From Rhodosorus marinus CCMP1338 (lineage: Eukaryota; Plantae; Rhodophyta): a DNA stretch of 64,000 bases. Position 1 is the stretch's first letter, and the number at the start of each line of letters is the position of its first letter. Of this stretch, positions 1 to 30,183 are shown one piece after another. The position numbers and the translations under genes were made by a program. Location of the stretch: NCBI GenBank assembly GCA_029953675.1, contig JAMWBK010000004.1:1-64000 (forward strand), in the 5' to 3' direction. The notes beneath the pieces were generated by a model. The model ran no database searches. It saw only the letters and a list, made by a program, of their open reading frames with translations, and was not told the DNA's origin.

Positions 1-423
1 CTAACGTAACCCCAGACTAACGTAACCCCAGACTAACGTAACCCCAGACTAACGTAACCCCAGACTAACGTAACCCCAGACTAACGTAACCCCAGACTAA
101 CGTAACCCCAGACTAACGTAACCCCAGACTAACGTAACCCCAGACTAACGTAACCCCAGACTAACGTAACCCCAGACTAACGTAACCCCAGACTAACGTA
201 ACCCCAGACTAACGTAACCCCAGACTAACGTAACCCCAGACTAACGTAACCCCAGACTAACGTAACCCCAGACTAACGTAACCCCAGACTAACGTAACCC
301 CAGACTAACGTAAACCCATAAACCCCAGACTAACGTAAACCCCAGACTAACGTAACCCCAGACTAACGTAACCCCAGACTAACGTAACCCCAGACTAACG
401 TAACCCCAGACTAACGTAACCCC
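1..423 (+). repeat. Terminal telomeric array (CTAACGTAACCCCAGA)n, C-rich strand, ~26 units
   Basis: Perfect 16-nt tandem repeat from base 1 with a few variant units near 310-340. G4 run on the opposite strand. The same unit recurs as short tracts at retroelement junctions. Confidence 0.93.
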
Positions 424-2515: not shown

Positions 2516-2916
2516 GTGAGCTTTATTGGGCAGTCGCCTAATGCGACGTAACACTAAGCCGATTGCTATCTAGGGAATCACTCACAACAACCCCGCTACC
2601 GGGGTCTCATGCTACGTTCAAAAGAAAAAACAGGAACCAGTGGGTTCTCCAACTGGTCCGCACGTAGAGCGCCAAGCGCAATCGCCGCGTTGCCCTGCCA
2701 TAGGATCCTGTTTAACTGGGATCGTGCATCCCTCAGCTCCTCATCTCGATGCAACAAGTGTTTACAACTGTCCCGCAAAAAGTCTTGCGTCAACCTCCCG
2801 CTCCGCCCAAAGGTCTCTATCGCGATCGGGATGAACTTCTCCTCGGGCTTTTCCACACTCATCGCCTCTTTATAGTGCGCGAGCTTGTAGTTCTCCGCCA
2901 GTTTCGCTGCATACCC
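2516..2916 (-). mobile_element. Family A, 5'-truncated copy (RLE C-terminus and intact 3' UTR)
   Basis: ORF 2596..2940 contains KLAHYKE...FIPIAIETFGR. The 3' end AATAAAGCTCAC is joined to GGTTACG. Confidence 0.88.
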
Positions 2917-3029: not shown

Positions 3030-6000
3030 GCGTACACTTTACTGAAGAACTCCCTATTGGAGCCCATTAAGAAGCAATAAGGATCCTATTGGTCAGCAAA
3101 GAAACCCCTAATGGGTTGTGTGGCTACGTTCTAAGATAGGGACGATGTCATAGTCTGCTTCGTCGACACGACGTGCCTGGGTGGCAAGGATAGCGTTTCC
3201 TTTCCACAAAGTGCGGTTCAAGATCGCCCGAGCCTCACTTACTTGCGTTGCCCGCTGATCCAGGTGTATAGTCGCTTCCTTGAGGAACTCACTCGCTTGT
3301 TGTCCCATCTGCCCAAATGTTTCCAGGCAGAAGGGGACGAAGATGTCGTCGTTATGTTCTCCGATACTGTCACGGTATTTGGACTCTTTAAACTTTTCCG
3401 CTTTCCGTGCCGCATACCCGGTCTCCCAAGACGCTTTGTGGAGGTGTGTTCTTTGCAAAGGCGAGGTCACCTTCACATCGATCACGTAGAGCTTGCCTGT
3501 TCGTGGGTGTCGGGCTAGAATGTCAGGCCGAAGCCGACTGCCTTGGTAGTGTCCGGTCGGTTCTATTGTCACTTCTAGTCGCCATTGTCTCAGCACTGTC
3601 GCCAGGGCGTCCCTGACCATGTTATGCCGAATTGTCCAACTGCCGGTAGAGCTGGTGCAGTGGTGAAGGCGTTGAATGCCTGCAGCGTCGTGTGGTTGGG
3701 AACATATCGTACACGTACTAAGTATTCGTACACCCGGCAGGGGTAATCCCAACAGTTGTCGAAGGCTCAGGTTCAGTTCTCCGCTACTTAGGCCGCGTCC
3801 GTGTTTCCTTGGCAAGTCTCGCAGCCAAGTACCCCCTCCTGATCCCTTGCAGGAGCGTATTCGCGCACGTGCCGTCTCGCTGATCTCCGCGTTCTCCACC
3901 ATTTCCTCGAATGCCCGTCGGTGACTCCAGTTGGAGAGGAGTTTTTGGGTTGAACCGATCAAGGGCCTGTCGGGTGGTGTGTGCGGGTTCTCTGCTTGTT
4001 CTTGGCTCTCCAACGATTGCCATTCTGTTAGGCGAAGTATGGGGGCCGGTGTTCCTCGTGCCAGGCAGCGTTTTGAGTGGAGGCTCGCTTCGATTAGTTG
4101 TGCTCCAAGTTGATCCGTCGAGTGGAGCAGGGGTCGAATGTGATGGTGCTCGGTCAGGTTCGTCGATGTGCAGGCATCGAGTAGCGCTCCTAGGTGGCTA
4201 GATCCAGTCCAATTGAGCTTCAGAGTCTGTCGCCAACTGCTGAAGAAGGCGAGGGGTTGTATTCGTGTTCTCATCGCTAGGCCTGCGCCACCCCATCGGC
4301 AAGGGAGCTGGATCTGCGCTTCGACCACGTCTTTTGCGGGTCCTGTGAGGCCCTGGCCTTCGAGGAGCGAGCCGCACAGTTTGTCGAGTTCCAGGAGCGA
4401 GATGCGATCGGCTTCGCGTGCGAGATTGGCTCCGTATTGTAGGGCGAGCGTGCGTAGAGCAAAGTCTAGACGCGGTCCTGCGCAGTAGCGGAATAGGCAC
4501 AGTTTAATTGGTAGCTCAGTGGTCGGTAGACGGATGACCTCTTGGACGAGTTTTTCATGTTCTCGTTGTAGCTTCCTGTTCGCGTCTTGGACGTAGGTCC
4601 GTGTGCCAATAGGGATGGAATAAAGTTGGATTCCGTCCCGGGTGACATGTACGTCGGGAATTTCCCTGTTGACGAGTCTGGTCGTCGGCAGTTGGAGTCC
4701 AAAAAGCTCGCATTTCGTCCTTTGAAGTTGTGCGCCTATTTCGGGGAGGTGGTGCTCGCTCCAGTGTAGCGCTTCTTTCACGTCCTTCAGAGGGCCAAGT
4801 AAGGTGAGGTCGTCGTGGATTGCGCTAAGGGTGATCCTCGGAAACCGGTCTCGTAGTGCTCGTAGGAGTGGGGAAAGGGCGAGCGCGTGTAAAGCAGGTC
4901 CCAACGGATCGCCTTGTTGGACTCCAGTCCAGGCTCGGAGCTGGAGCCAGTCATCGACATCGCTGTCTCGCCATCCGAATTGGCGTGGGGCGCTCTCGCC
5001 TCGTGGTCCGTAGCTCATTGTCATATGCGGCTTCAATTCGGGGAAAGCTAGCTCGATGATACGGTTTGCGAGGCGTCGGTCGATTCTGTTGAACGCGTTT
5101 GCGAGATCAAGTTTGAGGAGCACGTCATTTGGGCGCGCTGCGAGGTGGGCTTCCGCGAGGTGGATGGCGTGTTCGCAGCCGCCGCTGACCGAGATGCCGA
5201 GTTGTTCCGGGAGCAGAAAGTCGCGAAGGGGCGTGGCGACAGCGCGAAGTGTCCATTGGGTGACGGCCTTCCGCAGTACCTCAGGAATCCCTAGCGGGCG
5301 TAGGCGAAGAGGGTACCCTTGTCTAGCTTCGGCAGACGTTCGCTTGTCTTTCGCGAGGAGTCGGTTGCTGCGCATGGCTTCGAGAAACACGTCAGGGAAG
5401 CTCTCCGGAGTGGTGGCAAGCTTGCGAAGGAAGCGTACAAGTACCGGTTGCGTTGTCATGGTGAGACTTCGCAGATGTTCGGCTTTGAGTCCACTCGGCC
5501 CGGGGGCTGTGGCGTACGGTAGGTGTTCCAGCGTTGACAGGAGGCTCTCGTCAGAGGCCAAAGTCGGGTCCCATATCTTGCGTTGCAGTCCGTTGAGCTT
5601 TGCCTGTAGGGCGTCTTCAAGCTCCGAGGAGAGCGTTGCGGCCTCGTACTCAGGGAAGAGCGTAGTCAGAACGCGCCAGGTGGCAGGAGTCTTCGAGGCA
5701 AGATCGGTGGCCAGTAGGAGTTGGCTAGACTGGGACATACGTTGAGCTGTGGCGAGTTGTAGGGCTCGTTTCTGTCGGTGGCGGGTCTGAGGCGGCGGAG
5801 GTACGATACAGTTGGTGTCAAGGGTTTTGCTGTGAGCAGTAAGGTGTTCCCACACCGTGGAGAACCTTCCGTCCATAACGGCGAGCATCTGCGCAGAAGG
5901 GGCCAGGTCGCCTGTGTAGCCGAGTGCGAGACTGGGGAGAGCGAAGATGAACAGGCGTGACAGGTTCGGCGCTGACGTATCAAGGGCAAGTTCCAGGGCT

Positions 6001-6085
6001 TTCGACATGAGATGGTTCCAGCGTGTTTTCAGGTTATCGGGGACGAATTGGCGAGTAGGCGTCGGAGCCTGAGTCAGCTGCCACC
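3030..6085 (-). mobile_element. Family B, 5'-truncated copy with nearly complete RT-CCHC-RLE coding region and 3' UTR
   Basis: RT motifs LKLDLANAFNRIDR, GVQQGDPLGP and AIHDDLTLLG; knuckle CTICSQPHDAAGIQRLHHC; RLE RPDILA...VIDVKV...K. The 3' end is joined to GGTTACG. Confidence 0.92.
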
Positions 6086-7106
6086 CCAGACTGTCCCGCA
6101 AAAAGTCTTGCGTCAACCTCCCGCTCCGCCCAAAGGTCTCTATCGCGATCGGGATGAACTTCTCCTCGGGCTTTTCCACACTCATCGCCTCTTTATAGTG
6201 CGCAAGCTTGTAGTTCTCCGCCAGTTTCGCTGCATACCCGTTTTCTGCACTGCCACGCCTTATGTACTTTTCCTGTAGCGGTGAAATCACCGTCACATCG
6301 ATCGCGTACTTTTGAAAGGTCTTTGGATGGGTCGCCACGATATCTGGTCGCAGCTGGTAATTCTCAAAATACCTCTGCGGTTCTTGCTGTATGTCAAGAA
6401 AATTCCATCGGTTGAGCCATCTCCCTAGCTCCGTACAGAGCTCGTCGTGCCGTCTCTGCCATAGTCCCGTCGATGTTGGACAGTGTTGAAATCGTTGCAC
6501 CCCATTTGGGCCATGTTTCCTACGGCAACTGGTGCACTGCTCCGTTGTCCGCAACCCCGGAATCGGCAGCCCCAGCAGTTGTCGAACATTTACCTGCAAT
6601 TCCTGTGAGTCCAGCTTTCTCGGCTCTAGCAACGGTAGTTCCCGCAGCCATACCCCCGAACCCGAGCCGGCCGCCGATCGGATTCTTGCACGGTGTTCAT
6701 GCGAAACGCCCTCGTTGCCGACCAAACGTTGGAACGCGCGATGGTGTGCCTCCCTAGAGAGGGTTTGTTGTATTGAACCATGGTTCCAATCGCGAGGGGA
6801 GTCCGCTACTTCAGGTGCGGCTTCGTCTCTCAATTCGGGCAGCTTGGCCAGTCTCCGGATCCGCGGCGCCGTGTCTGGGCACAGTCTCCGCTCTATAGCA
6901 CGACTAGACGCGCGGATTTGCTCACCGATCGTCTCCGTTGACACCTGCAGTCGGCCTAGGTGGCTGATGTGTATGTCGCCACCTTGCCTGACCTGTCGCT
7001 CCACCTCCGTTATATAGGGCCACTGACCCGCATGGTCTCTCAGGGTCTGCGCCCAGGCCGAGAAGAACGCAATCGGCTGTATTCTTGCACGGGTCGCGAA
7101 CCCCAA
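3108..7106 (-). CDS. 1332-aa chimeric open frame: family A CCHC+RLE fused in frame to family B RT+CCHC+RLE (no native start)
   Basis: Continuous ORF. The junction at 6083-6092 is the telomeric 10-mer ACCCCAGACT overlapping both parents (compare 2766-2790 for A and 23311-23340 for B). Confidence 0.75.
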   Translation of the reverse strand: MGFATRARIQPIAFFSAWAQTLRDHAGQWPYITEVERQVRQGGDIHISHLGRLQVSTETIGEQIRASSRAIERRLCPDTAPRIRRLAKLPELRDEAAPEVADSPRDWNHGSIQQTLSREAHHRAFQRLVGNEGVSHEHRARIRSAAGSGSGVWLRELPLLEPRKLDSQELQVNVRQLLGLPIPGLRTTEQCTSCRRKHGPNGVQRFQHCPTSTGLWQRRHDELCTELGRWLNRWNFLDIQQEPQRYFENYQLRPDIVATHPKTFQKYAIDVTVISPLQEKYIRRGSAENGYAAKLAENYKLAHYKEAMSVEKPEEKFIPIAIETFGRSGRLTQDFLRDSLGWQLTQAPTPTRQFVPDNLKTRWNHLMSKALELALDTSAPNLSRLFIFALPSLALGYTGDLAPSAQMLAVMDGRFSTVWEHLTAHSKTLDTNCIVPPPPQTRHRQKRALQLATAQRMSQSSQLLLATDLASKTPATWRVLTTLFPEYEAATLSSELEDALQAKLNGLQRKIWDPTLASDESLLSTLEHLPYATAPGPSGLKAEHLRSLTMTTQPVLVRFLRKLATTPESFPDVFLEAMRSNRLLAKDKRTSAEARQGYPLRLRPLGIPEVLRKAVTQWTLRAVATPLRDFLLPEQLGISVSGGCEHAIHLAEAHLAARPNDVLLKLDLANAFNRIDRRLANRIIELAFPELKPHMTMSYGPRGESAPRQFGWRDSDVDDWLQLRAWTGVQQGDPLGPALHALALSPLLRALRDRFPRITLSAIHDDLTLLGPLKDVKEALHWSEHHLPEIGAQLQRTKCELFGLQLPTTRLVNREIPDVHVTRDGIQLYSIPIGTRTYVQDANRKLQREHEKLVQEVIRLPTTELPIKLCLFRYCAGPRLDFALRTLALQYGANLAREADRISLLELDKLCGSLLEGQGLTGPAKDVVEAQIQLPCRWGGAGLAMRTRIQPLAFFSSWRQTLKLNWTGSSHLGALLDACTSTNLTEHHHIRPLLHSTDQLGAQLIEASLHSKRCLARGTPAPILRLTEWQSLESQEQAENPHTPPDRPLIGSTQKLLSNWSHRRAFEEMVENAEISETARARIRSCKGSGGGTWLRDLPRKHGRGLSSGELNLSLRQLLGLPLPGVRILSTCTICSQPHDAAGIQRLHHCTSSTGSWTIRHNMVRDALATVLRQWRLEVTIEPTGHYQGSRLRPDILARHPRTGKLYVIDVKVTSPLQRTHLHKASWETGYAARKAEKFKESKYRDSIGEHNDDIFVPFCLETFGQMGQQASEFLKEATIHLDQRATQVSEARAILNRTLWKGNAILATQARRVDEADYDIVPILERSHTTH

Positions 7107-7112
7107 TCCGCC
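6090..7112 (-). mobile_element. Family A fragment truncated at both ends
   Basis: 6090-6240 is identical to 2767-2916. Knuckle CTSCRRKHGPNGVQRFQHC and RPDIVA..AIDVTV. Telomeric tract 7113-7132 at the 5' junction. Confidence 0.88.
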
Positions 7113-7132
7113 CCCCCCAGACTAACGTAACC

Positions 7133-7295
7133 GTGAGCTTTATTGGGCAGTCGCCTAATGCGACGTAACACTAAGCCGATTGCTATCTAGGGAATCACTC
7201 ACAACAACCCCGCTACCGGGGTCTCATGCTACGTTCAAAAGAAAAAACAGGAACCAGTGGGTTCTCCAACTGGTCCGCACGTAGAGCGCCAAGCG
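7133..7295 (-). mobile_element. Family A short 3'-terminal copy
   Basis: Identical to 2516-2678; flanked by telomeric repeats. Confidence 0.88.
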
Positions 7296-7296
7296 T

Positions 7297-7343
7297 GTAA
7301 CCCCAGACTAACGTACACTTTACTGAAGAACCCCAGACTAACC
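7297..7343 (+). repeat. Telomeric units enclosing a ~20-bp family B 3' stub (7311-7330)
   Basis: TAACCCCAGACTA-ACGTACACTTTACTGAAGAA-CCCCAGACTAACC. Confidence 0.75.
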
Positions 7344-7371
7344 TCAGCCTCCGATTAAACCATTCGTTCGT

Positions 7372-8385
7372 AATGGTGACACCACCGTCACATCCAGCGC
7401 ATACCTTTGTTTGGTCCTCGGATGTCTAGCAACGATATCAGGTCTCAGTCCGTAGTTCTCGTTCTCGAAGTACCCCTCAGGTTCTTGCTCTACGTCCATG
7501 AAGTTCCATCGCCTTAGCCACCGTGCCAGCTCTCTGCAGATTTCGTCATGCCTACGTTGCCACAGTCCAGTTGATGTTGGGCAGTGATGCAACCGTTGTA
7601 CCCCAGTCCTTCCGTGTTTACTCCGGCAACTAGTGCACTTCTCGGTGGTCCGCAATCCCGGAATTGGCAGACCCAGCAGTTGTCGAACGTTTACCTGCAT
7701 CTCAACCGCACTCAATTTTTTCGGTGTCAGCGTTGGTATTTCACGTAGCCAGACTCCCGACCCGGATCCCGCGGCAGACCGTATTCGAGCTCGGTTTTCA
7801 GGGGAGATTCGTGGGTTGGTGACCAGCTTTTGGAATGCACAATGGTGTGCCTCTCGAGAGAGGGTTTGTTGTATTGAACCATTATTCCAAGCTGCAGTCT
7901 CGCCCGGTGCGCTTCGAAGAGATGTTTCTCGCGGTTGTTGCAGGGTAGTCAGTGCCAAGATCCGCGGCGGGGTTTCTGGTCCGAGCCTCCGTTGTATTGC
8001 TCGCGACGATGCACAGATCTGGTCCGCCAGCTGTGCAGTCGACCATCGTTGATCCATCGGCTCGTATGTGTCTGGTGAGCGTTCTGCCGTAACCTCCCGC
8101 TCTAGTTCAGTCAGGTATGGCCATTTATCTTCATTGTTCCGGAAGGTGTTTCTCCATGACGAGTAAAACGCGATGGGTTGGACGTGCTTTCGAGTAGCGA
8201 AACCCAAACCTCCCCAGCAGCAGGGCAGAGCGATTTGGTCCGAGATCAGCTCTGCGTACTCATCGTCCTCTACAGCTGTCGTAGCGAGGCTGCCGAAGAG
8301 AATTTCCAGGTGATATCTGGTCATCACGTCGGCCTCGCGTGCCAGATTTCTTCCAAACTCGTATGCGAGGCATCGTAGCACATAG
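7372..8385 (-). mobile_element. Family A2 fragment (post-RT region, CCHC, RLE start)
   Basis: Knuckle CTSCRSKHGRTGVQRLHHC and RPDIVARHP..ALDVTV. 8140-8385 matches 21110-21394 in reverse complement. Confidence 0.85.
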
Positions 8386-8524: not shown

Positions 8525-9424
8525 CTATACACCCACAAGTTCCTGGGTCTTCTCCCACAGGATCTTGTTGTTGGTGGCAGTCACATCCTTGCTTGCGATT
8601 TTTCCTGCTCGTGTGTTTCCCCCCATGTTCATAATGTTCGGTCCATACATTTTTGAAGCTCCAGTAGCGAGCACCTCGTCCGATGTTGCTGCGTACAGGG
8701 TGGAAATTGCACCTTTGTCAGGAGACTGCATCATGAACTCCATCCCCCTCCCAATCCTTGTCAGCGCGCTCGTTTCTGCCTTTCTCAGCAAATCCGATTT
8801 TACAACACCGGGTTGTACCACAAACGACCTTACTCCGTCCGCCCGCACGCGATTATCAAGCTCTTGCGCGAACATAATGTTGTACAGCTTGCTAGTCCCA
8901 TACACATCAAGACCGCTCTTCTCGTAGCTCCTTCCCGCCACATCATCTAGGTCGGCCTTTGACACGTTCGCCTGGAGTGGCGACACTGTGACCACCCTTG
9001 CAGGAGCCGACTTCTTCAGCGTGTCTAACAGTAGAATCGTTAGTAGGTACGTCCCCACATGGTTTGTCCCTAGCGTTACTTCATAGCCATCCACGGTCTT
9101 GGAATGTGGGACCACCCCTGCACCGGCGTTGTTGACGAGAAGGTGAAGCGGCAGTCCTTTCTCGATAAACGCGTTTGCAAACGATCTTATGCTATCCGAA
9201 TTCGCTAAATCCAGCTGCATGAACTCCACCTTGGCATCAGGCTTCATCTTCTTGAGCTCCGCTACTGCATCAAGTCCCTTCTTCGGGGTTCGCGACGCGA
9301 TGATAACGTGTGCGTTGTTAAGCACGAGGTACTTTGCGGTAGAGAACCCAATGCCGATATTCGATCCGGTAACAATCGCGACTTTCCCGCTCTGATCCGG
9401 TATCTTGTTGACATCGAAACCCAT
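8525..9424 (-). CDS. Short-chain dehydrogenase/reductase (retinol dehydrogenase/WWOX-like), ~299 aa, apparently intronless
   Basis: TGSNIGIG Rossmann motif, LVNNAG, YGTSK catalytic motif, QLDLA. Likely start MGFDVNKIPDQSGK at 9424. Confidence 0.9.
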   Translation of the reverse strand: MGFDVNKIPDQSGKVAIVTGSNIGIGFSTAKYLVLNNAHVIIASRTPKKGLDAVAELKKMKPDAKVEFMQLDLANSDSIRSFANAFIEKGLPLHLLVNNAGAGVVPHSKTVDGYEVTLGTNHVGTYLLTILLLDTLKKSAPARVVTVSPLQANVSKADLDDVAGRSYEKSGLDVYGTSKLYNIMFAQELDNRVRADGVRSFVVQPGVVKSDLLRKAETSALTRIGRGMEFMMQSPDKGAISTLYAATSDEVLATGASKMYGPNIMNMGGNTRAGKIASKDVTATNNKILWEKTQELVGV

Positions 9425-9579
9425 CTTCTCCCATATATATATCTGAATTTCCCCAAAAACTTTAATACAGTTGATCCGTACTCTGTATTGCTCTTGTCCG
9501 ATACGTTGTCCCCTCGCCAAGCCCCGGAAAAGCGCTCCACATCTTGAGCATTTGCCTTCAGGTACATGTGCTCCATAGA

Positions 9580-10256
9580 CATGAAGATTGTTTTTGCTCT
9601 TTTTGTGCAAAAAGGCAAAAAAACAATCTTCATGTTACGATTGCCCTTCCAGTCCTGCAATTGTTGATTATGAAAGTAGCCTTCCTGTTCATCAGATGAT
9701 GAACGGGAAAGTAATGGAAATTCTTTTCATATATGGACACGATTTCTCCCTTGATATTCATTTAATCCTGTCGTTTTGTATGGGGTGTTCCGGATATGAG
9801 GAGCTTTCATAAAGCAACATTTGCAGGACCGGAAGCGCAATCAACATGAATGATTAGATTCAATAGGAACTGGGCAAATCAACGGTTTCACCAGTTCCCA
9901 GAACGGAAGCAGGAAGAGGAAAACAAATTCTGTCGTACCAGAAGATGTTGGTGAGTTCGATACTTCAGCACCATCTTGATCCTGATAAAAGAGCAAAAAC
10001 AATCTTCATGTTCGATTGCGCTTCCGGTCCTGCAATTGTTGATTATAGAAAGTAGCTTTCCTGCTCATCAGACGATGAGCGGGAAAAAGTAATGGAAATT
10101 CAGTACATACTATAGACACTATTTCTCCACTTGAGCATCTATTTCATTTAATCCTGTCGTTTTGTATAGGTTTTTCCGGAATGAGGAGCTTTTTCTCATA
10201 AAAGAAAACTAACATTTGCAGGACCGGACGCTGCAATCAACACTGAAGATTGTTTT
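9580..10256. repeat. Two diverged ~240-bp foldback units (9620-9855, 9990-10256) plus an upstream hairpin; MITE-like or structured ncRNA
   Basis: Terminal arms CTTCCRGTCCTGCAA / TTGCAGGACCGGA are complementary. Internal 12-13-bp hairpin with a compensatory change between the copies. Confidence 0.6.
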
Positions 10257-11819: not shown

Positions 11820-12112
11820 GCATCGTAGCACATAGCACTGCCGGCGTGGAGACGGAACAGGTTCACCCCTCGGTGAAGTTGCTGCTTGCAAACCGTTTAC
11901 TTGTCGATACTGTATTTAATTTGCACGGAATATTAACAAAGAACCCCACAAGACAACGGAAAATTCACAGAGGCCTATACACCCACAAGTTCCTGGGTCT
12001 TCTCCCACAGGATCTTGTTGTTGAGTGGCAGTCACATCCTTGCTTGCGATCTTTCCTGCTCGTGTGTTTCCCATGTTCATAATGTTCGGTCCATACATTT
12101 TTGAAGCTCCAG
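11820..12112 (-). pseudogene. Partial duplicate of the SDR 3' end and downstream flank, cut off by telomeric repeats
   Basis: Near-identical to 8370-8664 with small indels; ends at CCAG|GGGTTACG. Confidence 0.85.
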
Positions 12113-12134
12113 GGGTTACGTTAGTCTGGGGTTA
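12112..12134. repeat. G-strand telomeric tract followed by an inverted C-strand unit (fold-back)
   Basis: GGGGTTACGTTAGTCTGGGG-TTA-CCCCAGACTA. Confidence 0.75.
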
Positions 12135-13833
12135 CCCCAGACTATACGCACCACGACTGGACACGCCGAGGGTGATTAACCTGGATATCCCTGAGATTCA
12201 AGTGACTCGCGCCGGGACTACGTTGTACTCCATACCAATTGGAACTCGGGTGTTTGCGGAAGAAGAATGTCGAGCTATTCAAACGCGACATGCGAACCTG
12301 GTCAAATCGATTCAGCGACTCCCCGATGCTGAACTCCAAGTCAAGCTGGCCCTCTTTCGGTACTGCGCAGGCACAAGGCTCGATTATCATACACGTGGGC
12401 TGGCGTACCCCCTTGGACGTACCGTTGCCCGCGAGGCGGACGCGATCACCCTCTCGGAGCTTGAAGGCTTGTGTGGAGGCCTATGTCAACACCAGGATAT
12501 CACCGCACGTAAGGCTGCAGCGGTTGAGAAACAGATTCGACTCCCATGTCGATGGGGAGGACTTGGCTTTGCCACGCGCACGAGAATTCAACCAGTTGCC
12601 TTCCATGCAGGGTGGAAACAAAGCCTGTAAGAGAACACCACTGAATCACGCTACCTCGAACGGCTTTCCCAGGAGTGTATTGCGGCAGCACAAGGAGAAT
12701 CGCTGCGACGGGTGCGACTTGGATGGACAACTGATGGAACTGATGGACTTGCTTGGCAACTGGTGGAGGCAAGTCGCGCAATTAGACGACGTTTGCCAGC
12801 GACGACCAGTGCACGGATCCAGAGGCTGGCCGATTGGCAACCGCTGGAGGACTCGGCGGAAGGCACAGCGGAAGACACAGGAGGTACCCAAAGGTTTGAC
12901 GGTCCGATCCAAAAAACGCTCTCTCGAGAGTGTCACCGACAAGCCTTTGAGGAGCTTACTGGAGATTCAACACTGGACGACCTAGACCGGGCGAGGATCC
13001 GATCGGCATCTGGAACGGGGTGCGGGGTCTGGCTACGCGACTGTCCTAGTACAGGGCCGCGGCAGTTGACGCGAAATGAGATGTTGTGGAGCATGCGGAT
13101 GCTTCTAGGGCTACCACTGCAAGGACTAGGGCGGTCACACACATGCACGGTCTGCGAGCAACCACACGATGTGCGTGGGATCCAGCGGCTGCACCACTGC
13201 AGGACCTCATCAGGGATGCGAACCAAGAGGCACGACGAGCTAAAGGTAGAACTGAGTCGATGGTTACACCTATGGAGTTTCACGGAGATACAAGTAGAGC
13301 CTGAGGGGTTCTTTGCCGGGTCTGGAATTCGCCCAGACATCGTTGCACGACACCCGACGAGCGGATGCGTGTACGTGGTGGATGTGATGGTGACATCGCC
13401 ACTTCAAAGGCATCAGTTGAGACATACGAGCTGGAACTGCGGGTATGCTGCGAAACAGGCCGAACAAGCGAAGGCGTTGCATTATAAGGAAGTGCTGAGG
13501 GGGCAAAACCGAGATGTGGTTCTTGTGCCGTTCATTTTTGAGACATTTGGTCGAATGGGCCAGGCAAGCCTTGAATTTCTTCGAACGGCGAGCGCGCACC
13601 TGCATGATCGTGACTCCCATCTATCGTCGGTGAGGGGTCAACTAAACCGCATTTTGTGGCAGCACAATGCTGCGCTTGTTGAACACGCGATCGAGAAAGA
13701 TCGCGCAGATAGACCGATATTTCCCCTAAGTAGAATTTAGATGAGACTCCTGGAGAGGGAGTCCAGGTTTGGTTAGTGCGTACGTAGTGATCGTGTGATG
13801 CGCTACATTAGGTAGCTGCCCAATAAAGGCTAC
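12135..13833 (+). mobile_element. Family C, 5'-truncated copy with one premature stop (TAA at 12628) and intact 3' UTR
   Basis: ORFs 12025..12630 and 12712..13740; knuckle CTVCEQPHDVRGIQRLHHC; IRPDIVARHP..VVDVMV. The 3' end AATAAAGGCTAC is joined to GGGGTTACG. Inverted near-identical copy at 25170-26675. Confidence 0.9.
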
Positions 13834-13857
13834 GGGGTTACGTTAGTCTGGGGTTAC

Positions 13858-14290
13858 CGGCTCTGACCCGCGCCCTTCGCAGTAGTCGACTCCTGCCGTT
13901 CACGAAGCCTAACAAGGGTTCAGTGCCGCAGGAGCATCCCGGAGTTCGCCCTATCGGAGTACCAGAAGTTTTGCGCAAGGTAGCAACGCAATGGACTCTT
14001 CACGCGGTTATGGACAGGGTGCGTGAGCTCCTGGGTGCCCATACAACTGGGTATTGGAGTAAGTGGCGGGTGCGAACGCTCCCTTCACGCGATCCAGGCC
14101 CATTTGTCATGCGAACCCGATTCGGTGGTCCTTCGCCTAGACCTTGAGAATGCCTTTAATCGCATCGACCGACGCCTTGCCAAGCAACTGGTGGACGAAC
14201 ACTTGCCGGAGCTCGCACCAGTGTATAGACTTGGATATGGAAGCGACAACGCGGACTCACCGACGCTCTGTGGCTGGCGAGCCCGTGATC
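13858..14290 (+). mobile_element. Internal RT fragment of a telomeric-type element following a telomeric tract (13834-13857)
   Basis: RPIGVPEVLRK, GVSGGCERSLHAIQAHL and LRLDLENAFNRIDR, with one frameshift. Confidence 0.8.
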
Positions 14291-14773
14291 CACGAGCCCC
14301 AAGCTGGAGGCAGGCTGCGCCACCAGTAGTTGAGTCTGGGACCGGCACAAAAGTGGGAAAGCAAGCAGGCCGATTCCAGTATGCTGTCGGGTAGGTGCTC
14401 AATGGCGTCGGTAAGTTGCTTGTGCCGTGCCAAAACTCGCTCGCAGGAAGCTTGGACAAAGTTGTCAGTCCCCAATCCGACGCCGTGGTGTTCGAACCCT
14501 TCACGTTCGCTGATTAGTCGCAGAGTGGGTGGCAGAGAGGCCAGCGACACGTCCCTCGGGGGGAGAAAGCGACATTTTTCTGTTTCCACAGTCAAAACCG
14601 ACGCGACGTGCAATCGCTTCGATCGCGGTCAGCCCCCGAGCCAGGGTGTCAGGGTGCCCAGCAATGTTACGTCATCGTGGTACGCGCAGATTCGAAGATC
14701 CGAGACCTCAGTCGAAAGACGTAAAAGTACGAGCTGTAGGGCACAGGCATGAAGAAGAGGTCCGCAAGGGTCG
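14290..14773 (-). mobile_element. Family F RT fragment (YHDD region)
   Basis: Near-identical to 55835-56335. Confidence 0.85.
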
Positions 14774-14925
14774 AGCTTAACTAGCTCTTCTATCCCTTGT
14801 CCTGTTCGAAATACTGCTGGAACTCTCAGGTTTAACGATAAGCGGAGGGATAGGGGCTAAAGCTTTCTAGACGCTTCTATAGATGCTTCACCATCTCCAC
14901 AGAACTGCTTCCCCATCTTGTCACC

Positions 14926-15016
14926 ATAGACTTTATTAGGCAGCTACCTACTGCAGGGCAATACCACTACTCTGTGTCGCGCTAAACTCTCACTTAGACC
15001 CCCTGTCCAGGGTCTC
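14926..15016 (-). mobile_element. Solo 3' UTR (~90 bp) of a C'-like telomeric element at a non-telomeric site
   Basis: Reverse complement GAGACCCTGGACAGGGGGTCTAAGTGAG...CTGCAGTAGGTAGCTGCCTAATAAAGTCTAT matches 18984-19074. Confidence 0.75.
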
Positions 15017-15269
15017 CGGTACAAAAACATTTTCACCCAAAAATATCTCCAGGATAGAATACAACCTGGACACGTTCAGCAAGAGTGGCACTCACGCACA
15101 CTAGACCCTTACTAAATATGACAGCTCCAAAGTTGCTCCCTGAAGACCCACTCTGGAACCTGCCCAGGTAAGAAGCTGAGATAACCTCCATTGAAGAACC
15201 TTTGAGCTTCCAAGCGCTAATTCTGTTCTCATCACCAGCACCAATGAAAATGTTTTTCTCGCTACGCCG

Positions 15270-17700
15270 TACCCGAATGAGTCTATTTACAATCAGAAAG
15301 GGCGGTTTTTGCTCCTCCTTTTGTTTTCTATTGACATTAAGCAGACGCGCCTTCTTTTGGGTTCATGGACTCTGTTGGTTCTCGCTGGCTTCGGGAGTTG
15401 TTCCGCGAACGCCCTGACCGTCTTCAATCGTTGTTTACCCGCTTAAGTTTCCTGCTGTGGCGCATGAATGCCGCTTTGATGTTGGAGGCGCGAGTACTTC
15501 GCCGCGCTTAGTCTTTTTTTCCCCTCGGGGTTTTTTTTTTCAGCCTCCGATTAAACCATTCGTTCGTTCTTCCAGAGATGTACCTCGTTCCGCCAATAGC
15601 AAATGACCTGAGTGATATACTGGTTAATAATAAGAAGATTCTGCGGCGTTCAAACGCCCAAATTTTCTAGCGTGATTCCAATGTCCGACTTGTCAGATAT
15701 CCCTCGTCCAACGCATCCCAGTCTTCGGAAAGCATCGCTTTACTTTAACCCCATACCACGTATCCTCGCAAAGATCGGCGACCTTTTGAGCGAGTATTGA
15801 AAAGCAAGATTGCTGAGCATCTTTTTTTTTATCGCTATTCCCTACACAAATGAGTCTATTTACCATCAGAAAGTGCGTTTAGGCAGCGTGCAGGTTGTAG
15901 TTACTTTGGTCATTGCTATTGGCGGAACGGGGTATATTTCTCCGTCAAGGAAGCACCGACTGGTTTCTGAGTAAGACGTATGAACACTGGGTGCTGGAGG
16001 TGAGCGATCTTAACGCACGTAAAAGCGTAGTTTTTTGCCACTCATTTTATTTTCTATTGAAATTAAGTAGGTGCGTCTTTCAGAAATGTACCTCGTTCCG
16101 CCAATAGCAAATGACCTGAGGGACTGTAGGCTCCACGCTTCGGAGACTTTCATACTAGTTAATAATAAAGAGATTCTACGGCGTCCAAACGCGCTAATTT
16201 TCTACCGTGACTCGAAGTCTATTAATAGACTTATTTGTCCGTGGCCACGCTAGAAACAGAAATTTAGTGGATGGAAGTAAAACCACCAGTTTTTTTGTTT
16301 GGGGCGGGGAGGGATGAACAGATTTGCTTTAGTATGAGGTACTTTTCCTTTTTCCTAGCGAACTCCTTATAGTTCCCGTATGTGATGACTGATTATGCGT
16401 TTCTTAACGATTAAACCATTCGTTCTTAACGCGAGCCTAAATGCCTCAGCGTTTTCTCATAATCACATCAGCTGATCTCAGCTTTATTTTTGCACTTTGT
16501 GTTGCAGTTTTTACAAAACTTCAGTAAACCCTATGCCCCAAGGAGCACTCAGCATACGATGGCAGAAGGCATAGTGACGCAAGGCTATGGATAAGTTCAT
16601 TAAAAACAATACATCGCGCCAGGAAATTGAGTAATTTGTATAATCTGGGACAGAAAAAAAAGCCCCGCGGTAAAAAAAGACTAGATCCCGTGAAGATTGC
16701 CAGGATCTAACAGCGAAACAGCGACACAGCAGGAAACTTCGACGGGTGAACAAAACGAGGGGAAACGGTCACGGCGTTCCCGGAACAACTCCCGAATCCA
16801 ACGAGAACCAGCGGAATCAATAAACCCAAAACATTCAATGACCAAAACAGGTATCAGGGCATGAGGAAAAGCCGAAGCTCGTATTCCAGCGGAAGATCAG
16901 GCCGCAGCATATTTCACTTCTTTGCGACGTCTCATCGTTGTCGCGGTGGTTCCACTGCGCTCTCCCGCAGCCGGTAAATAACGACTAGCCTGACGATTCG
17001 AGAATTAGAGCAAATCAGAAACTCCAAGTGGGAGAACCAAACTCTCCACCCGGTGAGCACTGATGGTTACAGTCAGGAGTTTTTGGCAGCGCGGAGGTTG
17101 CAGTCACTCAGGTTATTGCAGGAAACTTGGACGGGTAAACAACGAGGAGACACGGTCACGGCACTCGTGGAACAAATCCCGAATCCAACGAGAACCAACG
17201 GAGTTAATAAACCCAAAACACTCAATGACCAAAACAGGTATCAAGGTATGATGAAAAGCCGAAGCTCGTATTCCAGCGGAAGATCAGGCCCCCGCATATT
17301 TCACTTCTTTGCGACGTCTCATCGTTGCCGCGGTAGTTCCACTGCGCTCTCCCGCAGACGGTAAATAACCACTAGCCTCATGATTCGAGAATTACTCGCA
17401 TTTCTGAACAAATCAGAAACTCCAAATGCGAGACCAAACTCTCCACCCGGTGAGCACTGATGGTTATAGTCAATAGATTTTGACCGCGTGGAGGTTGTAG
17501 TCACTCAGGTCATTGTTATTGACGGAACGAGGTACACATAGTGCTCTCGCCATCTTGCAGGAATGCCCGCTCACAACGTCCACGGTCTTTGCGAGGATAT
17601 GTGATCTGGGGTTTTTTGTTTTTGTTATAAGTAAAGCGATGCTTGCTGAGGATTGGGATGTGTTGGTCGAGGGATATGTGACAAGTCGTACATTGCCAGA
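15270..17700. repeat. Mosaic of degenerate direct and inverted low-copy repeats
   Basis: 16740-17070 resembles 17130-17470 (direct). 15560-15620 resembles 16080-16120 and, inverted, 17500-17540. 15680-15790 is inverted at 17570-17700. 15480-15567 is inverted at 50335-50425. Confidence 0.65.
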
Positions 17701-17805
17701 AGCGGGGATTGTGATAAGAGCTCAGGTTGAATTTCGACGGGAGTAAACGAGCTTGTAGAAGGTCGGCCGAAGTTGTCTAATCCTTGCAGAGAGAGCGGAT
17801 TGAAC

Positions 17806-18291
17806 ATGATGAAGTTGAGCGCATTAATTCTTGTCGCCGTGCTAGGGTTCACGATGGCGGTTCCGCTGATCGAGAAAGTTCATCTTGCGGAGAAAAATCA
17901 GGCGGGCGTTCAGGTTGCCAGTCACAAATTCGTTCCGAGTGCTGGCCCGGCAACGGTCGTTCAGGGTGCGGAGCCGGCAACGGTCGTTCAGGGTACGGAG
18001 CCGGCAACGGTCGTTCAGGGTGCGGAGCCAGCAACGGTCGTTCAGGGTGCGGAGCCGGCAACGGTCGTTCAGGGTGCGGAGCCGGCAACGGTCGTTCAGG
18101 GTGCGGAGCCGGCAACGGTCGTTCAGGGTGCGGAGCCGGCAACGGTCGTTCAGGGTGCGGAGCCGGCAACGGTCGTTCAGAATGCGGAGCCGGGAGCTGC
18201 TCTCAGCACTACGATAACCATCTACTTTCCTAATAACAGCGCCCCTTCTGACCCTTTTTTATTTTTCGAAATTAGCATGAGACCCCGGTAG
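17806..18291 (+). CDS. Secreted protein with 9 x PATVVQGAE repeats; C-terminus supplied by a retroelement 3' end
   Basis: Signal-peptide-like MMKLSALILVAVLGFTMA. Ends ...FEISMRPR-stop, the ORF2 terminus shared with families A/E. Confidence 0.6.
   Translation: MMKLSALILVAVLGFTMAVPLIEKVHLAEKNQAGVQVASHKFVPSAGPATVVQGAEPATVVQGTEPATVVQGAEPATVVQGAEPATVVQGAEPATVVQGAEPATVVQGAEPATVVQGAEPATVVQNAEPGAALSTTITIYFPNNSAPSDPFLFFEISMRPR
17947..18189 (+). repeat. 27-bp coding minisatellite, 9 copies (CCGGCAACGGTCGTTCAGGGTGCGGAG)
   Basis: Direct inspection. Confidence 0.95.
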
Positions 18292-18371
18292 CGGGGTTAG
18301 CGTAGGTTTTTCCCTAGATAGTACTAGCACTAGTGATACGCTGCAGTAGGCAGCTGCCCAGTAAATTTTAC
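18245..18371 (+). mobile_element. Short 3'-terminal copy (A/E-type) followed by variant telomere unit GGTTATGTCAGTCTGGGG
   Basis: Contains ATGAGACCCCGGTAGCGGGGT, CCCTAGAT and GCTGC-AGTAG-GCAGC-TGCCC-AGTAAATTTTAC. The 5' boundary is approximate. Confidence 0.75.
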
Positions 18372-18389
18372 GGTTATGTCAGTCTGGGG

Positions 18390-19074
18390 TCTGCGAGCAA
18401 CCACACGATGTGCGTGGGATCCAGCGGCTGCACCACTGCAGGACGTCATCGGGGATGCGAACAAAGAGGCACGATGAGCTGAAAGTCGAACTGAGTCGAT
18501 GGCTACACTTATGCAGTTTCACAGAGATAGTAGTAGAGCCTCAGGGGTTCTTTGCTGGGTGCGGAATTCGACCCGATATGTATCTAGCACGGTACCCGAC
18601 GAGCGGTTGCGTGTACGTGGTGGACGTGATGGTAACATCGCCACTTCAAAGGCATCAGTTGAGACATACGAGCTGGAGTTGCGGGCATGCCGCGAAGCAA
18701 GCAGGACAAGCGAAGGCGTTGCATTATAAGGAAGTGATGACGGTGGAAAACCGAGACGTGGTTTTTGTGCCGTTCATTTTTGAAACTTTTGGTCGAATGG
18801 GCCAGGCAAGCCTTGAATTTCTTCGCATAGGGACGGCGCATCTGCATGATCGTGACTCCCATCTGTCGTCGGTGAGGGGTCAATTAAACCGGATCCTGTG
18901 GCAGCATAATGCTAGGCTAGTTGAGCATGCGATCGAGAAAGATCGCGCAGATAGAACAATGTTTCCCTTGAGTAGAACTAGATGAGACCCCTGGCGAGGG
19001 GGTCTAAGTGAGTTTAGAGCGAACATAGAGTAGTGGTGTTGCGCTGCGGTAGGTAGCTGCCGAATAAAGGCTAC
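18390..19074 (+). mobile_element. Family C' (diverged C subfamily), 5'-truncated, RLE and 3' UTR
   Basis: ORF 18410..18985 is homologous to the C copies. The 3' end AATAAAGGCTAC is joined to GGGGTTAC. Confidence 0.88.
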
Positions 19075-19082
19075 GGGGTTAC

Positions 19083-19217
19083 GGAGAATCCGCTGGTGCC
19101 TGTTTTTTCTTTTGAACGTAGCATGAGACCCCGGTAGCGGGGTTCCAGTAAGTTTCCCCCTAGATAGGATTAGACGTAGTGTTGCGCTGCAGTAGGCAGC
19201 TGCCCAGTAAAGCTTAC
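19083..19217 (+). mobile_element. Short 3'-terminal copy (A/E-type)
   Basis: Encodes ENPLVPVFSFERSMRPR-stop. The 3' end AGTAAAGCTTAC is joined to GGTTACGT. Confidence 0.8.
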
Positions 19218-19225
19218 GGTTACGT

Positions 19226-20942
19226 ACGCTCAGCGCACTGTCCAACATGCTCCCGCTCGAGAATCAGCTGCACAATCCGACCAGCAGGACGATGCCCGGG
19301 CGCACAGTCCCAGCAGGCCGCGCTGCGACAGCTGCAGGCCACAGTGGGAGGGTCCTCCTGGGGACCTGAGACCAAACCGGTACTGGCGACCCTGAGGAAT
19401 GTAAGACCGCCACGGATGGACGAGGTAGCCCCATCGCACTTCACGACGGTTCTTTGCAGAGTCTTGGGGATTCCGAGCTCTAATGTGGCGCACGTGGACT
19501 TCATCGCTTCCCACGCGTGCTTACTATGCCATCCGGACGCGATTCCGATTCTGCAGAGCGCCATCTCTAGGGGCGTTTTCAGGACAGGGATTTTCGGATC
19601 GTTGACCCAGAGACACCCCGATCGGCAAGTGACTCTCTACACTGCCGGCCAGGCACTGGATACAGACAACCTGTTGGGCTATAACGAACGTCAGCTTATT
19701 GCCCCAGCGAACATCGGGCCCCAGACCCTGAAACGGGCAATTGAACAGACTATCCGGATTCGCGCGAGGCTTCGCAGGAGGCAACTCTCATTCAACACTC
19801 TCGCAGCGATACACGAGTACCTGGAGAGCAGACTAGGAGCCCTACAAGCCAGACAACGTACTCCAACGGTACCCGGGGAGAGTGCGGAACCCCCAGCGTC
19901 TGCAGCCGCCACGAACGTAGACTCTGAAGCCTCGTCCCTTACAGGGGACGCACAGGCAGCCCGTGGGACAGTCACGCTCCGGGTAGTCCCCTAGCCTAAG
20001 TACCTGAAGAAGATGCACCCGAGGATAACCCCTCACACAGAGCTCCCCTACAACCTGCCCGAGCCTCCTCAACACAAGCGGTCGCGAGTATCCACTGATG
20101 GCACAGGCCAGGATACCGAGATGACTCCGGCAGCCGTAGAGGTTCCACAGGGCAACACTGCACCACAGACCGACCACACTGCCACCCCTCACGCGATGGA
20201 CACATAGGACAGCCAGGAAGCACCTACGCAATAATGCCCAGACGACAATGGGGAATCAAACGAAGACGCGACGAGCCTCTGTTCTTCTCGGAGCGACAAG
20301 CCTGGATCAAACGTTGGACCGACTTCGTTGACGAGGTTACGACAGGAGGAAGGCACTTGACGCGCCTAACACACTGCCCGGTACCCACCCGGCGCTTTGT
20401 GCCCCGTGCCCACGTCAATACCTGAGCCACCATCTTCGCGCAGCTCTTGAGATTTCCATGGACACAGCTGCACCCGCCAACGCCAGTCTGCTTCTTGTCG
20501 GACCTCCAGACCTGGTGCTAGGACGTTCTGCACTTGACATCGGTATTCAGGTCACACATGTGCTTGAAGGAGAATTCCATACTGTCTGGACCGCGCTTGA
20601 AGACAGGGCGTCCCTACTGCAGCAGAATACTGCCCCACCGGGAACCGAAGCGACTCGCCGCCAAGCTTTAGGACGCAAGAAACAAGCCCTGAAACTGGCA
20701 CATCTCGGTCGCCTCTCGGACGCTGCTCGTCGACTACAGGCAACGGAAATGGCTCCTTTCACCGAGACTACCTGGCGCCAACTCCAAGGAATCTTCCGAG
20801 AACCTGCGGCAGGTGACTTACCAGACGAGTTGGTGGAGGCCCTGGAATCACTGCACAACACTAACAACACCACTCTTAAGCGCCGATGGGATCCCAGGAA
20901 AGCCGCTGATGAGGGCCTCCTGTCGATTGTGGCACGTCTTCC
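19226..20942 (+). mobile_element. Family E copy 2: partial ORF1 and ORF2 N-terminus, degraded, 3'-truncated by telomeric tract 20943-20981
   Basis: Homologous to 424-1800. TAATG stop/start at 20232-20236; internal stops and frameshifts. Confidence 0.85.
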
Positions 20943-20981
20943 GGGGTTACGTTAGTCTGGGGTTACGTTAGTCTGGGGTTA

Positions 20982-21394
20982 TATATCGAACAGGAGTGCC
21001 GGGGGTTGCAAAATAAGCATGAGAAACTCTTTGCGGAAATCGCCAAGCTCCCACAACCGGAGCTTACGACGCAAATTGCCCTCTTCAGGTTTTGTGCAGA
21101 AACGCGACTATACTATGTGCTACGATGCCTCGCATACGAGTTTGGAAGAAATCTGGCACGCGAGGCCGACGTGATGACCAGATATCACCTGGAAATTCTA
21201 TTCGGAGGCCTCGCTACGACAGCTGTAGAGGACGATGAGTACGCAGAGCTGATCTCGGACCAAATCGCTCTGCCCTGCCGCTGGGGAGGTTTGGGTTTCG
21301 CTACTCGAAAGCGCGTCCAACCCATCGCGTTTTACTCGTCATGGAGAAACACCTTCCGGAACAATGAAAATGAATGGCCATACCTGACTGAACT
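20982..21394 (+). mobile_element. Family A2 fragment interrupted by a family F 3' end
   Basis: QNKHEKLF..ALFRFCAETRL..LPCRWGGLGFATR; matches 8140-8385 in reverse complement. Confidence 0.85.
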
Positions 21395-21570
21395 GGACTG
21401 GCCTTTACTAGCATAGCCTGAAGCGCTACGCAAGGCGTGAAGATGAACTAATAACTAGGGAGGGAAGTATGCAACCCCAGGCGCCGATGGCGCGCCTCGG
21501 AAAGCATCTCGCTGGAATATCGCCAAAGGGAGACACTTAAACGCCTCAAGAGCGCCAAATATTCAGTAGG
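21395..21570 (-). mobile_element. Family F 3' end, broken and capped by telomeric tract 21569-21600
   Basis: Near-identical to 54407-54580; junction CAGTAGG|GGTTACG. Confidence 0.85.
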
Positions 21571-21673
21571 GGTTACGTTAGTCTGGGGTTAGTCTGGGGT
21601 GAGGGCTTTCGGACTTTGAAATTTAAGTTCATTGACGCGAGCTTGGAGTGTTTTACAAGGAGTTGATTTGGAA

Positions 21674-23260: not shown

Positions 23261-23262
23261 TG

Positions 23263-23301
23263 TCTGGGGTTACGTTAGTCTGGGGTTACGTTAGTCTGGG
23301 G
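23263..23301 (-). repeat. G-strand telomeric tract at the orientation switch of the array
   Basis: TCTGGGGTTACGTTAGTCTGGGGTTACGTTAGTCTGGGG, with a plus-strand element to the left and a minus-strand element to the right. Confidence 0.9.
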
Positions 23302-25098: not shown

Positions 25099-25169
25099 CC
25101 CCAAATGCCCCAGACTAACCCCAGACTAACGTAACCCCAGACTAACGTAACCCAGACTAACGTAACCCC

Positions 25170-30149: not shown

Positions 30150-30183
30150 CCCCCAGACTAACGTAACCCCAGACTAACGTAAC

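Follow-up and report, generated by a model that had tools for sequence, protein, structure and literature searches.

A predicted 3'-terminal RNA hairpin common to telomere-specific retrotransposon families of the red alga Rhodosorus marinus

Structured 3' tails are well described for several long interspersed nuclear elements (LINEs). The tail of UnaL2 folds into a stem-loop that has both a pentaloop and a bulged base (PMC1636434), and a tail stem-loop is also found in ZfL2 (PMC4176376). In the 3' untranslated region (UTR) of R2Bm, a 40-nt core is bound by the protein and guides the RNA end into the active site of the reverse transcriptase (RT); the primer-template duplex of R2 is formed by a few nucleotides that lie 3' of the UTR and are homologous to the target (PMC10499050). 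[quoted passage not shown] Here we describe the 3' ends of a group of retrotransposons without long terminal repeats (non-LTR elements) that are inserted in the telomere repeats of the red alga Rhodosorus marinus CCMP1338, based on the first 64,000 nucleotides of contig JAMWBK010000004.1 (assembly GCA_029953675.1), referred to below as the window. A structured 3' tail on a site-specific LINE is known; new are the elements themselves, undescribed telomeric elements of a red alga with a restriction-like endonuclease (RLE), and the presence of one module across several of their families. Nothing in the data overturns current understanding, and the findings fit the rule that LINE RTs recognise structured 3' tails.

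The Rhodosorus 3' ends are like those of UnaL2 and ZfL2 in having a short conserved stem-loop near the 3' end that contains a pentaloop and one bulged base, and a short terminus where reverse transcription starts or would start; the stem-loop lies no more than about 20 nt from that point and is maintained by compensatory change. They differ in that UnaL2 and ZfL2 belong to the L2 clade, have an endonuclease of the apurinic/apyrimidinic (AP) type, lack target specificity and carry the loop GGAUA instead of RNUAG, whereas the Rhodosorus tail is telomere-like and contains a hexamer that is a probable poly(A) signal. In Rfam 15 no family, the UnaL2 3' element and the R2 element included, matched any module of the window at E <= 1.

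One hairpin at the 3' ends of several families

A mechanical scan of the window identified 11 intact 3' ends of six sequence types (A, B, C, C', D and E), all of them located at element/telomere junctions. The order of the parts is the same in all 11: a 5-bp stem enclosing an RNTAG loop, 5 nt, the hexamer ARTAAA, and 6-8 nt ending in CAC or TAC, directly followed by the G-strand of the telomere. The hairpins that a first-pass annotation of the window had listed for types A, B, C, E, C' and D were all recovered in place and on the same strand. Its statements that the stem always pairs (five Watson-Crick or G-U pairs), that ARTAAA follows exactly 5 nt past the stem and that a short YAC-containing terminus abuts the telomere hold for each of the 11 copies. 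The distance to the insertion point, described as fixed, is near-fixed, with 17-19 nt between the last base of the stem and the telomere junction, and the hairpin, proposed for every telomeric family, is indeed present in all families with an intact 3' end. Two statements needed adjustment. The loop is RNTAG in all 11 copies of the window and not, as was claimed, always, given that a Rhodosorus transcript copy (L007) has AGGAG; and the stem, although all its five pairs hold, is more aptly viewed as a 7-bp helix that contains a bulged U.

The copies are found on both strands. Family A is represented by A1 at 2516-2556 (minus strand, hairpin at 2533-2547; UAGUGUUAC-GUCGC-AUUAG-GCGAC-U-GC-CC-AAUAAA-GCUCAC, abutting GGTTACG) and A2 at 7133-7173 (minus strand, hairpin at 7150-7164), the latter within a 164-nt 5'-truncated copy at 7133-7296. 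Family B modules are present at 3032-3072 (minus strand, hairpin at 3049-3063; GCUCC-AAUAG-GGAGU) and at 31687-31727 (B2, minus strand, hairpin at 31704-31718), where only GGTTAC precedes the next element. For family C we found C1 at 13793-13833 (plus strand, hairpin at 13802-13816; GCUAC-AUUAG-GUAGC) and C2 at 25170-25210 (minus strand, hairpin at 25187-25201), and for C' a module at 19034-19074 (plus strand, hairpin at 19043-19057; GCUGC-GGUAG-GUAGC, with G-U at pair 4). Family D has D1 at 26697-26737 (minus strand, hairpin at 26714-26728; GCUGC-AUUAG-GCAGU) and D2 at 30185-30225 (minus strand, hairpin at 30202-30216). The E type comprises E1 at 18331-18371 (plus strand, hairpin at 18340-18354; GCUGC-AGUAG-GCAGC) and E2 at 19177-19217 (plus strand, hairpin at 19186-19200), a copy of about 135 nt that is truncated inside a more upstream hairpin (hairpin 1, see below). 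A2, B2, C2 and D2 were added by the mechanical scan, and the pairs A1/A2, B1/B2 and C1/C2 are near-identical.

A covariance model (R1), built from eight variants, scored all training copies at 48-66 bits (e.g. 57.5 bits for A1 and 48.5 bits for the B module at 3032-3072) and also recovered four other sites. Two of these are mini-copies of family B on the minus strand: one of 32 nt at 2933-2964 (29.3 bits), 5'-truncated inside the hairpin and with telomere on both sides, and one of only 16 nt at 7313-7328 (CUUCAGUAAAGUGUAC; 15.8 bits). The others are a decayed C'-like module at 14926-14966 (minus strand; CCUGC-AGUAG-GUAGC, one broken pair, telomere flank lost; 40.5 bits, outside the training set) and a weak, decayed module-like site at 39147-39186 (plus strand; GAUAC-GGUAG-GUAGC ... 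AGUAAAG CCUC GGGGTT; 20.9 bits, E 0.004). On both strands of the window (128 kb) about 7 hairpins with such a loop are expected by chance and 12 unrelated ones were found, but the composite motif, with ARTAAA at the fixed spacing, is expected only about 0.004 times.

In a joint analysis of ten 3' ends, RNAalifold predicted the hairpin unguided and extended it by two pairs across the bulged U to 7 bp. The extension involves the 'GC' of the TGCC spacer, which pairs with the 2 nt located 5' of the stem; in family B the extension pair is flipped to G-C. The covariation that had been noted for the stem is real: four of the seven pairs change on both sides (for instance, where the other types carry C-G and U-A, U-A and C-G are present in A, and pair 4 occurs as G-C, C-G, A-U or G-U). 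Among the nine distinct sequences 90.5% of the cells pair and the covariation score is 0.44, compared to 0.26 in shuffles, none of which (0 of 500) reached the observed score. When the partners were slid by 1-3 columns, the score was 0.01-0.16 and pairing fell to 19-60%. G-U pairs occur in B, D, C' and L007 (four of the eight variants) and are C-A mismatches on the antisense strand, so that the hairpin belongs to the RNA of the sense strand. Little or no variation is seen in the loop, the bulge, the hexamer and the terminal YAC, compared with an identity of only 41-57% among the C-terminal protein domains of the telomeric families. One pair was lost in the decayed copies (14926-14966, 39147-39186, and the related transcript contigs L001, L004 and L005). 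Taken as a comparison between families, these data make it very probable that the hairpin is a selected RNA structure.

Several points weigh against this conclusion. There are just 8-9 distinct sequences, from one window and one transcriptome, and because these are phylogenetically related the shuffle statistics overstate the significance. With about -6 to -9.5 kcal/mol for its consensus fold, the short hairpin has only moderate stability, and it is the minimum-free-energy fold in no more than four of nine contexts of 110 nt. The z-scores of the whole UTRs are unremarkable (-0.2 to -2.5), and the case for a structure therefore rests on comparison and not on stability. Single-sequence folding offered three competing structures, all of which were rejected: the helix UAGUG:CAUUA of A and D is absent from the other families, and neither a shifted GCAGU/GCUGC hairpin in E2 nor the helix CGGUAG-GUAG-CUGCCG in C' is kept across families.

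Outside the window, two protein searches returned a handful of Rhodosorus transcript contigs. In L007 the module is intact and abuts the same telomere repeat; besides the deviating loop it has a seventh stem variant, GCUGC/GCGGC, with a U-G pair. L001, L004 and L005 share one degenerate module, with a common A-like end, one broken pair and a 4-nt loop. Two further sequences, L006 and L008, end short of the 3' UTR. A protein-profile scan and a telomere-repeat scan for more copies in metagenome contigs of the Joint Genome Institute yielded nothing.

The larger module, the hexamer and the junctions

Two further hairpins precede the terminal one. Hairpin 1 falls within the last 30 or so codons and hairpin 2 (ACCCCG...CGGGGU) at or just past the stop codon; a UAG-rich spacer then leads to the terminal hairpin. 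Hairpin 2 varies as well, with a compensated ACUCC/GGAGU in C and a shorter AACCC/GGGUU in B. The trinucleotide UAG occurs 5-9 times in the last 110 nt (e.g. 2516-2625, minus strand) of every family, a 3- to 4-fold enrichment over the about 2 that composition would give; in coding sequence the figure is about 0.65 per 110 nt. Both hairpin 2 and the terminal hairpin carry UAG in their loops, and in B and E1 the one in the hairpin 2 loop serves as stop codon. The motif UUAGU, located upstream of the terminal hairpin, is also found in the telomere repeat.

A unit that lacks an RT carries the same 3' end. E1 (17614-18378, plus strand) has telomere fragments on both sides, and its open reading frame (ORF; 17807-18291) specifies a signal-peptide-like N-terminus and nine times PATVVQGAE, with a 27-nt tandem repeat at 17947-18193. 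The sequence that E1 has in common with families A and D and with L007 is confined to the last 120 nt or so, module included. E1 would look like a non-autonomous partner that uses the module in trans, which recalls the tails that UnaL2 and ZfL2 have in common with their partner short interspersed nuclear elements (PMC1636434, PMC4176376); it is a single copy, so that a one-off template switch fits as well. The analysis as a whole suggests that the terminal hairpin is probably the 3'-most part of a cis-acting RNA module of about 120 nt, common to at least five co-resident families specific for the telomere repeat.

The hexamer ARTAAA is most simply read as an algal poly(A) signal, because host transcripts carry the same class of hexamer near their ends: in four Rhodosorus host transcripts (one with a poly(A) tail) AUUAAA, AGUAAA or AAUAAA is located 20-31 nt before the end. 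UAAA and GUAA have been reported as the dominant red-algal poly(A) signals for C. merolae (PMC6413133). As the hexamer is just 6-8 nt from the end of the element, cleavage at the usual distance would fall 14-25 nt inside the flanking telomere unit, and the RNA of the element would gain a telomere G-strand tail.

All 3' junctions read ...YAC(N0-4)(G)GTTACG and the 5' junctions are clustered within GGGG^T^TA^C^G. The elements are telomere-specific, with a fixed position and orientation in the repeats, their sense strand being the G-strand and their 3' ends facing the chromosome terminus. At least GGTTAC follows every element, even where the next element directly adjoins (B2, C' and E2). The bases between YAC and TTACG are family-specific and identical within a family, namely GG in A, GCGG in B, GGGG in C, AG in D and CG in L007 (in full, and each followed by TTACG, CAC-GG, TACGC-GG, TAC-GGGG, TACA-G and TACC-G, respectively). 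Since these bases are family-specific, the copied template extends into the telomere-like (G)GTTACG and the boundary is something other than a simple nick in the target. A run of A residues between element and telomere, as in the genomic poly(A) tails of SART1 and TRAS1, was found in none of the copies.

The first-pass annotation had proposed that the terminal TAC mimics the telomeric GTTAC for priming. In support of this, the 16-nt B mini-copy joins the telomere in register: on the C-strand the join reads ...CTAACGTA directly followed by CACTTTACT, and GTGTAC replaces the telomeric GGTTAC, which fits priming via CGTA/UACG microhomology. The family-specific junctions show on the other hand that the template runs past TAC, so that it is probably not TAC alone but the telomere-like or read-through sequence following YAC that serves as priming tail.

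Possible roles of the hairpin

We consider it probable that the hairpin is part of a cis-acting 3' tag, in which the element's own RT-endonuclease recognises the hairpin, the poly(A) signal supplies the telomere tail and the nicked C-strand primes. For template recognition as the role of the hairpin as such, we put the chances a little above even. Coding capacity, sequence anatomy, junctions, covariation and strand specificity are seen in the data; protein binding, poly(A) site, nick position and annealing are the steps that we infer in the following scheme. The element would be transcribed and ARUAAA would act as poly(A) signal, such that the mature RNA ends some 14-25 nt into the telomere unit, with a G-strand tail. 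The RT-endonuclease would bind the 7-bp hairpin with its bulged U and RNUAG-type pentaloop, which would select the RNA and set the register; hairpin 2 and the UAG-rich spacer may be bound along with it. The endonuclease would nick the telomeric C-strand near GTAAC^C, and, at about 18 nt 3' of the hairpin, the freed 3' end would pair with the (G)GUUACG tail and so prime the synthesis of complementary DNA (cDNA). Frequent early termination would yield the many 5'-truncated copies.

Two further observations speak against this scheme. The loop is common to the families, whereas recognition of own RNA would predict family-specific loops (compare ZfL2-1 and ZfL2-2), and a common host factor would fit equally well. 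Moreover, the transcript contigs L001 and L007 read through the hexamer, which is thus not an efficient terminator in every transcript. The main rival, unlikely in our view, assigns the hairpin to a composite signal for 3'-end processing or RNA stability. Here the hairpin would present or enhance ARUAAA or protect the RNA end, and its readers would be the cleavage and polyadenylation factors of the host rather than the protein of the element. The common loop is what a shared host factor would lead one to expect, the hexamer resembles a poly(A) signal of the class used by host transcripts, it is held at a 5-nt spacing of which 2 nt belong to the stem extension, and elements of a distant clade (the F clade, see below) also place a hairpin directly before ARUAAAG. 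However, the four host transcripts inspected have no comparable hairpin before their hexamer, and in the F clade the ARUAAAG unit is reiterated in tandem repeats of 9-12 nt, a signature of RT slippage at the start site and not of polyadenylation; the read-through of L001 and L007 also counts against this role.

The abundance of UAG raises the thought that a host factor that binds RNA or the telomeric single strand docks on the module via UAG/UUAG, similar to telomeric GUUAG, with the hairpin displaying UAG and the factor carrying the ribonucleoprotein to the chromosome ends. Such docking would agree with the UAG counts, with the UAGs in both loops and with the upstream UUAGU, but the argument is purely sequence-based, some of the UAGs are stop codons of the ORFs, L007 keeps the stem with AGGAG as its loop, and no factor of this kind is known for this alga; we regard it as quite improbable. 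Less credible still is a functionless inherited palindrome, the apparent conservation of which would stem from common ancestry and from the retention of the 3' end by every truncated copy. All copies are homologous, several form near-identical pairs and the sample is small, yet the stems differ at four of seven pairs and stay paired, with wobble intermediates, dead copies lose pairing, and loop and hexamer are fixed while neighbouring UTR and proteins diverge strongly. A palindrome that acts as DNA or cDNA, for instance by snapping back to prime second-strand synthesis or, in the duplex, as a dimeric protein site, is equally hard to credit. Any hairpin sequence is an inverted repeat in DNA, and second-strand priming in RLE elements is poorly understood; however, with G-U pairs in four of eight variants the cDNA strand would have C-A mismatches and the duplex would contain imperfect palindromes.

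A tentative extension of the tag reading, to which we give distinctly less than even chances, is that the module of about 120 nt, with its 41-nt core, serves as a portable address tag for a guild of RLE retrotransposons and their RT-less passengers. The shared hairpin would select the RNA, and the poly(A) signal, 6-8 nt from the end, would make each transcript acquire about one 16-nt telomere unit as primer-binding site. If true, this would be the first compact and experimentally tractable 3' tag for a telomere-targeting R2-like enzyme, and a case in which 3'-end formation of the transcript is harnessed to make a target-complementary tail. R2-type enzymes are under development for site-specific gene insertion, and the limiting factor is knowledge of the minimal accepted RNA and of how the priming register is set. 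The window offers a very small and comparatively well-supported 3' module (the 41-nt core) with an enzyme that targets a long, unique telomere repeat of 16 nt, and the natural stem variants already form a series of compensatory mutations.

The elements and their subtelomeric setting

The long ORFs of the telomeric elements contain an RT domain (Pfam RVT_1, E 2e-12 in family B and 1e-8 in family D), followed C-terminally by a CCHC knuckle and by the RHD/N, E, (R/K)PD and D motifs of an RLE. In seven aligned sequences C150, C153, H157, H167, C168, R178, H179, R211-P212-D213 and D228 are invariant. With these domains, the lack of LTRs, the variable 5' truncation, the precise 3' ends and the site-specific insertion, the elements belong to the non-LTR retrotransposons of the RLE type (CRE/R2/R4/NeSL/HERO groups); copy lengths range from 16 nt to about 3.5 kb, all with the same 3' end at telomere repeats. 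The closest database proteins are from Rhodosorus marinus transcriptomes (45-52% identity, one fragment 75%). A relative with 48% identity is encoded by L006 (GCA_039819145.1, JBCBSL010000655.1), which is filed under a cyanobacterial metagenome-assembled genome and is probably a eukaryotic contamination of that bin.

R2 proteins were the sole matches of solved structure in a search of the PDB, with weak similarity (E of about 1e-5) and with the R2 RLE region aligned. R2Bm has the same class of architecture (RT, then CCHC knuckle, then RLE), but R2 targets 28S ribosomal DNA, has N-terminal zinc-finger and Myb domains, neither of which was found in the element proteins by a Pfam search, and has a 3' UTR of about 250 nt with another fold. 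Considering also the telomere repeat as target, there is no support for placing the Rhodosorus elements in the R2 clade proper. SART1 and TRAS1 are similar in their insertion at a fixed point of a telomere repeat, and SART1 in addition in its orientation, with the sense strand continuous with the G-strand, and in a 3' UTR with stem-loops that is recognised in trans (PMC7265360). They differ by their AP-type endonuclease, two ORFs of another kind, a genomic poly(A) tail at the junction and a target repeat of 5 nt instead of 16 nt. MoTeR and FoTeR of Magnaporthe and Fusarium are, like the present elements, RLE-type non-LTR elements that are confined to telomere repeats and form arrays of truncated copies, but their target is TTAGGG. 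MoTeR2 is a non-autonomous partner with termini common to MoTeR1. The 5' end of FoTeR and MoTeR faces the chromosome terminus (PMC12857005), whereas it is the 3' end in Rhodosorus; a term search in the FoTeR paper gave no mention of a 3' hairpin. Telomere-specific RLE elements thus extend to red algae, with the orientation of SART1 and not that of MoTeR/FoTeR.

The family B element (3030-6082, minus strand; RVT_1 and RLE motifs) comprises about 990 codons (RT and RLE) of an ORF of 1332 aa listed at 3108-7106, and its 5' end is marked by a 10-nt telomere tract at 6083-6092. The first 340 or so codons of this ORF (6083-7114, minus strand) encode an endonuclease domain that belongs to another family and shows 63% identity with the copy at 7368-8207. 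A novel double-endonuclease architecture, which the RLE-like N-terminal third might suggest, was rejected, as this third is a separate 3'-truncated copy joined in frame via the telomere tract; the ORF is a chance fusion of two insertions. The family D element D1 (26696-30150, minus strand) contains the end of ORF1, an ORF2 of 1042 aa (26792-29920; RT-RLE, Pfam RVT_1) and the 3' module at 26697-26737. D-type elements have as their ORF1 an ORF of 542 aa without Pfam match, present at 21601-23261 (plus strand), 23763-25107 (minus strand) and from 47721 onward (plus strand). Over its last 77 aa this ORF shares 98.7% identity with the 5' part of D1 (30150-29920), from which it follows that the order of a full-length element is 5' UTR (GGACTTTGGAGTTTATCG...), ORF1, ORF2 (RT-RLE) and 3' module. 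The telomere-flanked ORF at 21601-23261, which has no module, was considered as a counter-example to the presence of the hairpin in every family and rejected, because it is a D-type ORF1 that is 3'-truncated and telomere-capped.

The first 423 nt of the window (1-423) consist of a 16-nt tandem repeat with CCCCAGACTAACGTAA as plus-strand unit and TTACGTTAGTCTGGGG as G-strand unit ((TTACGTTAGTCTGGGG)n read on the minus strand; Tandem Repeats Finder gave a period of 16, 26.8 copies and 95% matches, next to pattern counts). The array is the true chromosome end and its repeat is the target sequence of the elements. The repeat is also present in the R. marinus transcript contig L007 (2199-2219). No rotation of TTACGTTAGTCTGGGG was found in a literature search, and the paper on the chromosome-level genome of R. 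marinus, in which 12 of 17 contigs have a telomere, mentions telomeres and describes neither the repeat sequence nor these elements. Short telomere-repeat tracts recur up to about 32.6 kb, with isolated fragments deeper in the window, and between them lies a nest of head-to-tail, mostly 5'-truncated non-LTR copies. Much of a subtelomere consists here of telomeric RLE elements, in an organism whose telomere repeat is unusual. A single clear host gene is present in the window and encodes a short-chain dehydrogenase (8525-9610; 84-85% identity to R. marinus proteins).

Some rearrangements are apparent in this region. The block 12112-23301 has the G-strand on the plus strand and is thus inverted relative to the rest of the subtelomere, and 12112-12144 is a head-to-head palindrome of telomere tracts. 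Elements that are broken internally and capped directly by telomere repeats are found at 424, 7343, 12111, 20942, 21568, 23261, 32582 and 47703; five of these caps are in the register GGGGTTACG, and the broken elements resemble breaks that have been healed. One 3'-truncated element (424-2466) is capped by the terminal array itself. Just inside the nest of telomeric elements, at 33423-34997 (plus strand), lies an ORF with RT and RNase H of the Ty3/gypsy type, i.e. of an LTR retrotransposon.

A second, distant RLE clade (the F clade, about 25% identity; clearest at 54.5 kb and 59.5-61.4 kb) is not associated with telomere repeats. At 35.25-35.44 kb (plus strand), 54.40-54.56 kb (minus strand), 61.30-61.52 kb (plus strand), 43.12-43.42 kb (minus strand) and 38.39-38.64 kb (minus strand) its 3' ends show a 7-bp hairpin, GCGUAGC-N7-GCUAUGC, directly followed by tandem units of 9-12 nt that contain ARUAAAG, i.e. 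(AGUAAAGUCC)n, (CGUAAUAAAGCC)n, (AAAUAAAGCC)n and (CAAUAAACC)n. These tandem terminal units resemble the (UGUAA)n of UnaL2 and, judged by their sequence, look like the product of RT slippage, as in that element.

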